64,000 nt of DNA from Macrostomum hystrix (GCA_950097015.1 CATNEN010000030.1:3100001-3164000); one strand, 5' to 3'. Positions 40,301-58,083 are shown, counted from the first letter of the stretch. Numbers and translations are program-made. The notes: generated by a model not told the origin, from the sequence alone.

Positions 40301-40558
40301 GCTGCGATTGTAGAAGGCCGTTGATTCGGCGATGAGTTCATCGGTGAGCTTGTTCAGTTTCTCAACCGAGTCCGGGAATGCCAGGAGACAACCAGGCGGC
40401 ATCTTTCGGGCATTGTTGATAGTGGCGGCTGCCGTTGTTGCCATGGCGACGACTGGGAGTAGATTGGTTTTAAATATCGAAGATTGCACGGCGACAATTG
40501 ATTGGCGGCAACAACGGACTGTAGCGCAGAGCACAAGCCTAGTTGGGAGTGTGGCGAG
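37373..40558 (-). CDS. THOP1: M3A metallo-oligopeptidase (thimet oligopeptidase / neurolysin homologue); 680 aa from ATG 40444, plus a 38-codon ATG-less extension from the acceptor at 40558
   Basis: Exons 40558(40444)-39220, 38682-38219 and 37726-37373, GT-AG and in frame. Motifs HFYLDLYPRDGKYGHAACF, ETFFHEFGHAMH (HExxH), [39 protein letters not shown]. THOP1 versus NLN cannot be resolved without a tree. Confidence 0.95.
37800..38062 (+). mobile_element. SINE family 2 in peptidase intron 2
   Basis: Colinear with 47352-47667. Confidence 0.85.
38787..39128. repeat. 20-bp minisatellite (TCAGTCACTCAGTCCCTCTA)n
   Basis: Fills most of peptidase intron 1. Confidence 0.95.
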
Positions 40559-40886
40559 CTGGAAATACAATTTGGGCGGTTGAAATTGAGCTTGCTTTCG
40601 ACTGATGAACACAGATAAATTATCTCTCTGCACGGGAAACCGCAAGGGGTGCCACCTTGATCTATTGTAAATTGTAAATAAAAGTACAACGGCAAATTGT
40701 GCTGAAACCAATCGAATTGTTTTTATAAAAATGCTTGATAGTTATTTTACCACAACCGTTTAATTAGGAAACAAAATAAATGAAAATAAAATTGAAATCA
40801 ATTAAAAAATGCAGCTTGCACACGCATTGCGCAAGTTTCAGTTCAGTATAGAACACAGTGAATAAGCGGCTCCCCTCACAATGTAG

Positions 40887-53898: not shown

Positions 53899-56800
53899 TT
53901 AAGATACGCCGCGCAATTGCGTCACTAAACTGATGACCTTGTCAACAGCCTCCTCCGCAGTGGCTAGCACGGGTACATTCTCTCGATTGGCCAAGTCTAG
54001 CAAGTACATCCGACCGCGATTGTAATCCTTAACAGCGTCAGGCGGCAGCTCGCAGCCGTCGCCGGTTCCGTTGGCTGCTGTTCCATTCGCCGGAGCCGAG
54101 TAGAGTTGCACATGAAGGACTACTCGGGCGCCGCGACCAATGAAATGAGCCGCTTCTAGCATAGCGGCGGTGGACCAGGTGTCGCAGGTGATGACGAATA
54201 GCAGCACCAAGCTCTGTTCGCGGGCGCCGGATTCGTAAGATAGGAACCTGATTGACCAGTGAGAAATCTGCAAGGCAAAGGCTCGTTATTAGCGGTACTC
54301 ATCGGCTGCCAGTCACTTTTATGCTTCAGGGTACCACTGATTGATCAATCACGGTGCTTCAGGATACCACTGATTGACCAATCACGGTGCTTCAGGGTAC
54401 CACTGATTGATCAATCACGGTGCTTCAGGGAACCACAGCTATCCTGATACTACAGGTACCATAACTGAATCAATCCTGATGCTTCAGGGTACCACAGCTG
54501 GATCAATCCTGATGCTTCAGGGCAGCACAGCTGAATCAATCCTGATGCTTCAGGGTACTACAGCTGGATAAATCTTATTGCTTCAGGGTACCACAGCTGG
54601 ATCAATCCTGATGCTTCAGGGCACCACAGCTGGATCAATTCTGATGCTTCAGGGTACCACAGCTGGATCAATCCTGATGCTTCAGGGTACCACAGCTGGA
54701 TCAATCCTGATGCTTCAGGGTACCACAGCTGGATCAATCCTGATGCTTTAGGGTACCACAGCTGGATCAATCCTGATGCTTCAGGGCACCACAGCTGGAT
54801 CAATCCTGATGCTTCAGGGTACCACAGCTGGATCAATCCTGATGCTTCAGGGTACCACAGCTGGATCAATCCTGATGCTTCAGGGTACCACAGCTGGATC
54901 AATCCTGATGCTTCAGGGTACCACAGCTGGATCAATCCTGATGCTTCAGGGCAGCACAGCTGGATCAATCCTGATGCTTCAGGGCAGCACAGCTGGATCA
55001 ATCCTGATGCTTTCAGTGTCCCAGGCATTGTGCGTGAGTCCCGAGGGATTGTACTGTACCTGAGGATTATAATATGATATGCCGGCAGCCTGCAGTCTGG
55101 GTATTGCCGAGTCATCGCGCCATCGGCTCTGACCGCAGGTTCCGCCCAAGAATACGTCGTACTGCGGCCGGCAGGTAGACGAAACAGCAGGTCCGCCTGA
55201 GGTCGCCGCGCTGAGCAGCCGCCTAGCCGCAGAAAACGGCCAGACCAGTGCGGACCACAGCCACTCGGTCCAGTCTTCGCTCCAGCCGCCGCCGCCGCCG
55301 CCGCTGCCACAGCCGCTGTCGGAGGCGCTGGAATAGATAAGGCACAGGTCGGCAAAGGTGATTCGCTGGTCAGGCGCTGGCAGCACAGCGGACACGTCGC
55401 GACTGCTTTTGCTGCAGCGTCGGCCGCCGCCGCAGAGCATTGTCTCCAGGATGAGGCTGGCAGCGTCGGGCGAGATGCGGCCGGTGTGGTCGATGTCGTG
55501 ACAGCGGAACAGCTCCCAAAGCAGGGTGAGGGTGCGGCTGACCGGAGCGCCGGAGTCCCAGACTGGGCTGACGCCGTCAGATGTTGTCAGCTTAGTGACC
55601 GATTGCTTCTGCGGGTTTGCGCAAGGCTAATTTAGATGAAATGACACCTGAGCCAATTCGGCAAGGTGTACAGCCACAGCTATTGGGGTGGCGCACTCAA
55701 AGGCTCTTTACAGCTGTTCAGTCTGTGGACTGTAGGGTTGGGGCATCAACCTAACCACCCCAAAAATGAAGCATTGGGGGATTGTATCGGACCAGTCGGA
55801 TGAATTCTAAGCTAAGGACAAAAAGACAGTCAATTAGTCGGAGAGAATAATCTCACCTGTTTAACCAGGATTTTAACAGCCTGCAGAGCCGTTTCTAGAC
55901 TTTCAAACACAGGTATGTGACACTGCTCAACTAGGTCAATCAGGAACAGCAGGCTGCGATGTATTGACTCCTGCTCCCTGTGAACATAAAGTACTTTTTT
56001 ATATCAGAATCAAACAGTTGAAAGTTTATTTTCCGCAATTTAATTTGGGTTTTTTCCCTCAATGCATGAGGTTCTAATCAATTTGCTTCGGGAATCTTAA
56101 TCCTTTATATATTGAATCTAAATCACTTGGATTCACGAAATGCTAATCCTACGGATCTTCAATCTATATTAAATCCCTTGGTTTCATTGGATCCTAATAC
56201 TACGGATCTTGAATCTTAATTGTTTAAAGGTTTAAAGGATTCCACGTCTAAATCCCATGGGTTCATGGAATCACAAGTCAGAATACATAGTTTTTTATAG
56301 GATTTTATGTCTAAATCATTTGTCTCTTATAGGATTCCAAATCGAAATCCCCAGGTTTCATAGGATTCCAAATCTTAACATTGTGGCTTCACGGGATCCT
56401 AAGCGAGCAGATTTTTAATCTTAATCCTTTGCGCTTATTGATATACGAACCCTACGGATCGTAGGGTGTTTTTCCATTCATTTCCATCCTAAATCACCCA
56501 TTAGCATCCGTGCACGGCATCGCCGAACCTTACCAGCGACAATTGGCGATGCGGCTCTTGCCAGTGGTGCAAGCGTCCGGTATGACCAGCACGAGATTGC
56601 GACCCTGGCCAGCCAGATAGGCTGATTCAACAATCGACGCGATGCCGCGAGTGCGCGGATCCAGGACGAACAGAAGCACAGCGGCGCTGTCTTTGGCGGC
56701 ATTCTCAATGTCAATTAGCTGCGGATACCAGGTCTCCACTTGCTGCGGGCGGAATCGCACGAAAAGAGAGATTCGTATATAACGTCATAATTAGATGACG

Positions 56801-58083
56801 TCATAATTAGATGACGTCATAACTAGATGACGTGAAAATTAGATGACGTCATAATTAGATGACGTCATAAAAGACAGAAGGACCCACCGGATTATAGAAG
56901 CTGATTCTCTCTTTAACAAGAAACGGCACGGCGGTGTCCACTCGCCAGGTGGTTGGATTGCAGGCGCCACCGAGAAACACCGAGCAGCGCGGCTCGTCAC
57001 CGTTGAATCCGCCGCTGCTGCGGCCTGGTAGAAATTTCGATTGACCGCCGGCGCTACGACTAAAACGGCGCCATTTGGCGCCACTTGACTGACGACCGCA
57101 GGCGTTTACCGACGCCGCCGATGTCAAGCTCCGGCTTTGAGTCGAACTGACTTTTCGCCGATTTTTCAAACAGGCAACCAACACGCAGAACATCTCGAAC
57201 GAGAAGCCGGAGCTGCCGTGCCGACTGTGCCTGCTGGCGCGGAGAGCGGCTTTTAGGCTGACTGGAAACTCGCTGCACTGCAGCTCCAAGACTGAAAATG
57301 TAAGTTTAAATTCAGAATCGATTAGCTTTTAAAGCCTTTAATTGTTCTCTGATACGAAGTCAGTCATTCCTTGTTGTCTCAGTCATTCCTTGGTGTATCA
57401 GTCATTCCTTGGTGTATCAGTCATTCCTTGGTGTATCAGTCATTCCTTGGTGTGTCAGTCATTCCTTGGTGTATCAGTCATTCCTTGTTGTGTCGGTCAT
57501 TCATTGGTGTGTCAGTCATTCCTTGATGTATCAGTCATTCCTTGATGTTCAGTCATTCATTGGTGTGTCACTCATTCCTTGATGTTTTGGTCATTCATAA
57601 GTGTGTCGGTCATTCCTTGGTGTGTCGGTCATTCCTTGTTGTGTCGGTAATTCATTTGTGTTTCAGTCATTCCTTGGTGTCACTCATTCCTTGATGTATC
57701 AGTCATTCCTTGATGTTTTGGTCATTCATAAGTGTGTCGGTCATTCCTTGGTGTGTCGGTCATTCCTTGATGTATCAGTCATTCCTTGATGTTTCGGTCA
57801 TTCATTAGTGTGTCGGTTATTCCTTGATGTATCAGTCATTTCTTGATGTTTCGGTCATTCATTAGTGTGTCGGTCATTCCTTGATGTATCAGTCATTTCT
57901 TGATGTGTCGCAAATTCCGCTAGACTTACTCTGCGATTTGCTGGGATAGACTCCTAAATAATGCGAAGCCTTCTGAATGCGCTGCACCAGTTGGCCTCTG
58001 TCTGTGCGAGCGGCGCTGTCTAATTGGTAGCGATCGAATGCCGCCCTCAACTGCCTGCCGATTTGAGTTTGTTTCGTAATAGG
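53899..58083 (-). CDS. raw: Raw/OLRN-1-like protein: two nucleoside 2-deoxyribosyltransferase-like domains, each preceded by a degenerate EF-hand-like segment (about 601 aa, 5' end unresolved)
   Basis: Exons 58083-57930, 57291-56888, 56742-56534, 55977-55857, 55608-55060 and 54267-53899 (1806 nt, in frame). Duplicated signature VFLGGACNPTTWRVDTAVPFLVKERISFYNPQV and VFLGGTCGQSRWRDDSAIPRLQAAGISYYNPQI; LLFV..TR..ASIVESAYL; EF-hand-like ELFRCHDIDHTGRIS. Confidence 0.85.
54330..55012. repeat. 33-bp minisatellite (CAGGGTACCACAGCTGGATCAATCCTGATGCTT)n
   Basis: About 20 units filling the last raw intron; the first units are a variant type. Confidence 0.96.
55642..55762 (-). mobile_element. Decayed SINE family 1 fragment
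   Basis: GACACCTG...TACAGCTGTTCAGTCTGTGGACTG similarity. Confidence 0.6.
56781..56870. promoter_or_regulatory. 16-bp tandem repeat of CRE/ATF palindromes in a raw intron (candidate enhancer)
   Basis: ATGACGTCAT with TGACGTCA at 56796, 56812, 56844 and 56860, a variant at 56828, separated by TAATTAG. The repeat is certain; the function is inferred. Confidence 0.4.
57355..57910. repeat. About 19-bp degenerate minisatellite (GTCATTCCTTGGTGTATCA)n
   Basis: Fills a raw intron (57292-57929). Confidence 0.92.

Follow-up and report, generated by a model that had tools for sequence, protein, structure and literature searches.

In a 64,000-nt stretch of the Macrostomum hystrix genome (GCA_950097015.1, CATNEN010000030.1:3100001-3164000; hereafter the window, with positions counted from its first letter), two genes, encoding a mitochondrial-type tyrosyl-tRNA synthetase (TyrRS) and an M3A (thimet/neurolysin-type) peptidase, have reading frames that open in phase 0 directly after a splice acceptor, with no genomic in-frame ATG before the conserved N-terminus of TyrRS or the N-terminal extension of the peptidase. 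Comparison with Macrostomum lignano leads us to propose that the initiator Met of TyrRS and of a long form of the peptidase is probably donated by a trans-spliced leader RNA, with a neighbouring raw-like gene, which does not have this arrangement, starting at its own ATG. The reported flatworm spliced leaders all end in AUG, and this AUG can initiate translation, according to Cheng 2006 (J Biol Chem 281:733), as cited in PMC9851317 and other papers. The M. lignano leader ends in ...TTGCATG, so that the AUG would have a U at -3 (UUGC-AUG), and the published M. lignano trans-splice acceptor motif is YTNCAG; in M. cliftonense and M. hystrix the leader sequence is strongly conserved, and its end is probably the same ATG. 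All genes and splice sites described below lie on the minus strand.

The start of TyrRS

The TyrRS gene extends over 44798-51301, with a TGA stop at 44798-44800 and exon blocks that are kept in M. lignano. Among solved structures, human mitochondrial TyrRS (2PID, 3.6e-22) ranks first and bacterial TyrRS next, and by sequence the enzyme belongs to the mitochondrial (bacterial-type) class. Exon 1 (51126-51301) comprises 58 codons and 2 nt and encodes a basic, acid-free start without an in-frame ATG; M. lignano exon 1, colinear with it, has a genomic ATG as its first codon. Its frame is open from 51301 to the donor after 51126, and the 3' splice site TAACAG stands directly before the first codon, CGT, comprising a TAA two codons upstream and then CAG at 51304-51302, the AG of which (51302-51303) is the proposed leader acceptor. 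Since TAA and CAG immediately precede codon 1, a colinear upstream ATG is impossible, and exons 1 and 2 together encode 173 codons, through the HIGH-motif region in exon 2 (50606-50947; Pfam tRNA-synt_1b, 3.6e-15), with no Met at all. In two M. lignano TyrRS copies, ATG-CGC stands where the window has CAG|CGT, at equal spacing to a common LCRRCLS motif, so the orthologue has a Met at the junction and the window misses exactly this Met codon, with the acceptor CAG in its place.

To follow expression of the TyrRS 5' region, contigs of four runs were aligned to positions 50520-52020 of the window (1,501 letters). The runs are of undeclared kind, about one third of sampled words were present in them, and they were taken as RNA-like, with exons making up about 0.4 of the stretch; a CAG repeat at 51192-51248 was masked in the alignment. 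Contigs of all four runs covered exon 2 and joined 51126 to 50947 across the GT..AG intron at 50948-51125 with zero mismatches, and exon 1 is therefore real and expressed. These contigs also bear on whether the missing ATG might be an assembly error, or TyrRS a pseudogene. The long CAG repeat nearby could disturb assembly, and the evidence here comes from RNA contigs, not DNA reads, but the contigs of the four runs match exons 1 and 2 without differences and are correctly spliced, and none of the conserved exons interrupts the frame, which makes either possibility very improbable. The repeat includes a run of 13 AGC (Ser) codons (51200-51238) that follows the presequence-like part of TyrRS and is absent from M. 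lignano. The TyrRS contigs break because of this run, the long ones ending within the 13-unit AGC repeat.

In a small X1 contig, two neighbouring bins had depths of 5.58 and 2.79, values that fit coverage of 51249-51302 with the mask ending at 51248; the same depth arithmetic recovers known exon ends elsewhere in the depth table. These depths are consistent with, and do not prove, an alignment that leaves the genome at 51302, at a G common to the acceptor and to a leader ending in ...AUG. Further upstream, no RNA contigs from the four runs were found across 51336-51539, and the 230 nt before exon 1 were free of RNA. A transcribed stretch at 51826-52020 (no strand assigned), in which contigs of two runs end at 51826, was considered as an upstream cis-spliced TyrRS exon and rejected: the next bases on the minus strand are GAAAA, with no GT donor. 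The contig ends at 51826 are probably a poly(A) site at the 3' end of an upstream transcript.

One copy of a dispersed repeat (about 200-290 nt; window 51508-51722, plus strand) sits between this upstream transcript end and the TyrRS acceptor. The repeat is common to M. lignano (72-88% identity; for example L001 6733-7035), and other copies lie at 2860-3153, 3433-3717, 15627-15809, 19170-19434, 21501-21755 and 48419-48565 of the window. Its summed contig depth in the RNA-like runs reached hundreds to thousands, with the high-depth stretch at about 51540-51743, and ARAGORN found no tRNA in 51508-51722.

We propose that the TyrRS pre-mRNA is trans-spliced at the CAG at 51304-51302 and that the leader AUG would become Met1 of the basic, acid-free N-terminus. 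No functional protein could start without the leader AUG. An earlier note on this DNA had proposed that trans-splicing would control mitochondrial import across a candidate operon; nothing suggests regulation of TyrRS, and the leader AUG would simply be a constitutive initiator.

Two candidate starts in the M3A peptidase

The M3A gene (37371-40558) has full-length similarity to PF01432 (Peptidase_M3) homologues and is 81% identical to its closest match, M. lignano PAA54643, and 45-49% identical to vertebrate THOP1 and NLN; its exon blocks are kept in M. lignano, and no same-species transcript proteins were among the matches of the protein search. The frame opens after the acceptor TTCCAG (AG at 40559-40560), the proposed leader acceptor, which fits the YTNCAG motif. 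M. lignano has an acceptor at the base homologous to 40559, and DNA similarity between the two species starts exactly there. From the acceptor to an internal ATG (40442-40444) there are 38 open codons in the window (40445-40558; 4 Arg/Lys, no Asp/Glu), which with a donated Met would resemble a presequence, and 32 in M. lignano, in neither case with an ATG or an acidic residue. The M3A orthologues are thus also without Met at the junction. Eight M. lignano models from two annotations, which start -3, 0, +3 or +15 nt from the acceptor, all take in the extension and none begins with Met; each of the four NCBI copies carries the label partial.

The internal ATG has a strong Kozak context in both species (GCC-ATG-G in the window, ACC-ATG-G in M. 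lignano) and falls in an invariant alignment column, which corresponds to Met1 of thimet oligopeptidase and, in a bat neurolysin, to an internal Met located after the N-terminal extension; it is the likely start of a short cytosolic form. This raises the alternative that the extension is 5' untranslated region only, with protein made from the internal ATG alone and a frame left open by chance, a reading that the strong context and the alignment with thimet oligopeptidase favour. By our own calculation, a 38-codon open frame would arise by chance in about 16% of cases. Against it, frame 0 is the sole frame open in both species (alignment score 40 versus -1 and -2 for the others), the length difference between the species is 18 nt and in frame, the 38 + 32 codons contain no acidic residue, and vertebrate neurolysin has the same two-form layout. 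Moreover, a leader joined at 40559 would supply the first AUG, in frame and with no stop, so that some long form would have to be made. Silent changes in 12 of the 15 identical residues likewise speak for conservation of the extension as protein. Differences at the first, second and third codon positions number 13, 8 and 21, a bias that rests on about 32 codons (our own chi-square, P near 0.06); the evidence for constraint is marginal, a point in favour of the untranslated reading. Taken together, we consider an untranslated extension distinctly unlikely.

Under leader donation, trans-splicing at 40560-40559 would place the leader AUG in frame with the 38-codon presequence-like extension. With the leader AUG in a weak context (U at -3) and the internal AUG at 40444 in a strong one, leaky scanning could yield two forms from one mRNA: initiation at the leader AUG would give a long form, probably mitochondrial, and initiation at the internal AUG a short, cytosolic one. 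An AG also lies exactly 8 nt before the internal ATG in both species (CCCAG at 40453-40454 in the window, GCTAG at L001 10084-10085 in M. lignano). Use of this AG as a second leader acceptor would take the leader AUG out of frame and could offer another way to make the short form.

The N-termini of both proteins are presequence-like. With an added Met, the first 30 residues contain 4 Arg/Lys, 1 His and 0 Asp/Glu in TyrRS and 3 Arg/Lys and 0 Asp/Glu in the M3A long form. The peak hydrophobic moment is 0.54-0.55 for the two N-termini, with the M. lignano orthologues alike, and by composition both are rich in Ser/Thr/Ala/Leu and predicted to be capable of forming an amphipathic helix, as expected of mitochondrial presequences.

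Raw, Spartan and the case for cis-spliced starts

The raw-like gene (53899-58454), recognized by domain and homology searches, carries two PF15891 domains. Its M. lignano orthologue, P0106 (PAA54646), is not marked partial and begins MKSKFLQ, encoded from a mini-exon of ATG plus 17 nt with donor GTAAGA, followed by a short intron and the acceptor CGCCAG. The window contains a homologous mini-exon, with a coding part at 58435-58454 (ATG at 58454-58452 plus 17 nt; donor GTGAGA), an intron 1 with a 23-nt tandem repeat (379 nt; 58055-58434), and exon 2 (57930-58054) after the acceptor CGGCAG (AG at 58056-58055), with an alignment to M. lignano that runs across the acceptor. Splicing gives a product that begins MKSKFLT-QLRAAFDRY, and on this homology translation of raw begins at an ATG of its own, in a mini-exon with 20 coding nt that is joined by cis-splicing. 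The site at 58085-58084 was accordingly rejected as an acceptor: these two bases belong to an in-frame TAG stop (58086-58084) within intron 1, in the poor context GACTAG, and because the upstream stop is TAG, the opening of the frame after an AG is automatic in raw. The earlier note had listed three ATG-less genes that open at acceptors and had the leader supply the Met in each; this stands for TyrRS (51301) and the M3A gene (40558), where leader donation is the best reading on comparative evidence rather than on leader-bearing reads, and it falls for raw, where the cis-spliced, ATG-bearing upstream exon that the note had named as a refuting outcome is present at 58454-58435, as identified by M. 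lignano homology. The trans-splice motif is also matched by the acceptor before the third coding exon of raw (TTTCAG, AG at 57292-57293), where joining of a leader would place its AUG out of frame and open a short upstream reading frame.

Spartan, a single-exon gene (40887-42113) in which a domain search found an SprT-like and an SPRTN zinc-binding domain, has its own ATG in the window at 42113-42111, in line with the earlier note's count of three ATG-less genes in four; an exact look-up of its product gave no match. Seven codons after this ATG, directly before Trp8, lies an in-phase acceptor, TTACAG|TGG (AG at 42093-42094), which fits YTNCAG and has a homologue in M. lignano, where CTTCAG|TGG heads a Spartan frame without ATG back to the previous stop. 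The congeners thus differ in whether the Met is genomic: for TyrRS it is encoded in M. lignano and missing from the window, and for Spartan the reverse holds.

Several observations weigh against leader donation at TyrRS and M3A. Within the window, a search with Rfam and leader patterns found no leader RNA gene, and the species' own leader was not seen in this analysis. Leader-bearing reads or contigs were likewise not seen among the four runs over 50520-52020, in which the CAG repeat (51192-51248) interrupts the TyrRS contigs and the small X1 contig is listed without its loose end. The TyrRS acceptor TAACAG agrees with the YTNCAG motif in its CAG only. In both M. lignano copies (ATG-CGC at L001 1573-1578 and L005 22332-22337), the first codon of the public TyrRS product (494 aa) is the CGC immediately downstream of the genomic ATG; in an attempted rebuild of its coding sequence, many splice combinations fitted. 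Raw shows that tiny ATG-bearing cis exons occur in the same gene block, and in the model of one M. lignano Spartan copy (508 aa) a cis exon with an ATG (L004 6417-6560) lies upstream, spliced onto the common acceptor. The DNA of this extra exon reads like a transposase end in another frame, and judged by its sequence the 508-aa model seems to join a chimeric 5' exon by cis-splicing to an acceptor that otherwise lacks an ATG.

The last two cases point to the main alternative, namely that TyrRS, M3A or both have small unseen upstream cis exons carrying the ATG, which would make the leader irrelevant to the frame. The raw mini-exon, with 20 coding nt at 379 nt upstream, and the modelled Spartan exon are precedents for it, and flatworm acceptors are widely common to cis- and trans-splicing (PMC12582326). 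On the other hand, in M. lignano TyrRS, codon 2 follows the ATG without a break, which leaves no place there for an ancestral intron; the two-species comparison revealed no conserved block upstream of exon 1 of TyrRS or M3A; no RNA lies at 51336-51539, and the contigs at 51826 and above do not end at a donor; and the transcript-based M. lignano annotation recovered the raw mini-exon, yet left all four M3A copies 5'-partial. We therefore regard such exons as unlikely, and leader donation as the better account of TyrRS and the M3A long form.

The four genes form a co-oriented block, transcribed in the order raw-like, TyrRS, Spartan, M3A. M. lignano contig NIVC01002876 contains the same four genes in identical order and orientation, and two further contigs carry raw with TyrRS and Spartan with M3A, respectively. 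The flatworm operon criterion is co-orientation with a repeat-adjusted spacing below 1 kb (PMC8629364). The Spartan stop lies 328 nt from the M3A acceptor, the transcript end at 51826 lies 524 nt from the TyrRS acceptor (about 215 nt of which is dispersed repeat), and 2.7 kb, about 1.2 kb of it arrays, separates the TyrRS stop from Spartan; in M. lignano the gene order is kept with spacers of 1.2-7 kb. An operon is plausible for the Spartan-M3A pair only, as a candidate suggested by its 328-nt spacer. Tandem arrays fill parts of many introns and spacers of the block (for example 49545-50513, 52027-52496, 53400-53815 and 54321-55012), and upstream of the raw-like gene over 5 kb (58709-63977) is filled by a 36-nt satellite with 97% identity.

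Implications and comparison with known systems

For the annotation of Macrostomum genomes, conserved genes that seem 5'-truncated or are labelled partial, as all public M. lignano M3A records are, can be complete once the leader AUG is counted. Caution is needed, as a frame that opens after an AG is insufficient evidence: it is automatic where the upstream stop is TAG, and coding mini-exons of 20 nt exist. The swap between a genomic ATG and an acceptor in congeners suggests how easily a start codon can pass to the leader. A broader proposal would have the start codon of one protein move between genome and leader among relatives, the choice between leader and internal AUG set the mitochondrial/cytosolic ratio of M3A, and leader addition or scanning tune the import of co-transcribed neighbours; we put this forward tentatively and regard it as doubtful.

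These cases bring no new principle. The earlier note had considered the coupling of trans-splicing to mitochondrial import undescribed, but the mechanism is known, and this link is already described for other genes, namely Echinococcus TGR and Trypanosoma brucei IleRS; the novelty lies in the two genes concerned and in their occurrence in this genus. For the use of the leader AUG itself, PMC9851317 reports that in Schistosoma mansoni this AUG is in frame in 28% of trans-spliced transcripts and that more than 40 cDNAs need it, and in Echinococcus granulosus 143 of 187 leader-bearing clusters count as full length with the leader ATG as start. The S. mansoni phytochelatin synthase paper, considered as a further precedent, does not describe such a case. 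The genes described here resemble those of the Cheng 2006 type and the 'slORFs' of PMC9851317 in that the leader probably ends in AUG, the acceptor is in phase 0 and the orthologue N-terminus needs a Met exactly there. They differ from the Cheng 2006-type cases in that the evidence is genome comparison only, in a free-living Macrostomum, and that the same Met is genomic or absent between congeners.

In Echinococcus granulosus TGR, mitochondrial and cytosolic variants come from alternative trans-spliced mRNAs, as later papers cite from Agorio et al. (2003, J Biol Chem 278:12920), with two transcription starts and two acceptors (PMC2873472). The M3A peptidase is comparable in being a flatworm gene in which trans-spliced mRNA would decide the presence of a mitochondrial leader peptide; unlike TGR, the proposal here involves one acceptor and leaky scanning. 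If it is correct, M3A would be a second flatworm gene with a leader-dependent N-terminus that decides between a mitochondrial and a cytosolic enzyme. Alternative trans-splicing gives T. brucei IleRS its dual targeting (Rettig et al. 2012, PMC3273800), so that there, too, the choice of trans-splice site sets the mitochondrial import of an aminoacyl-tRNA synthetase. In contrast to TyrRS here, the trypanosome leader has no start codon and the longer IleRS mRNA just includes an upstream genomic AUG, and the flatworm TyrRS, a dedicated mitochondrial enzyme, gives no hint of a second form. A parallel within the peptidase family is mammalian neurolysin (endopeptidase 24.16), for which long mitochondrial and short cytosolic forms are reported (Kato et al. 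1997, as cited in PMC10607720). Neurolysin and the flatworm M3A peptidase would share a layout in which the cytosolic form begins at an internal Met, in the same alignment column, downstream of a presequence; in the mammalian gene both AUGs are genomic and are used through alternative promoters, whereas the upstream AUG of the M3A peptidase is absent from the genome and would come from the leader.

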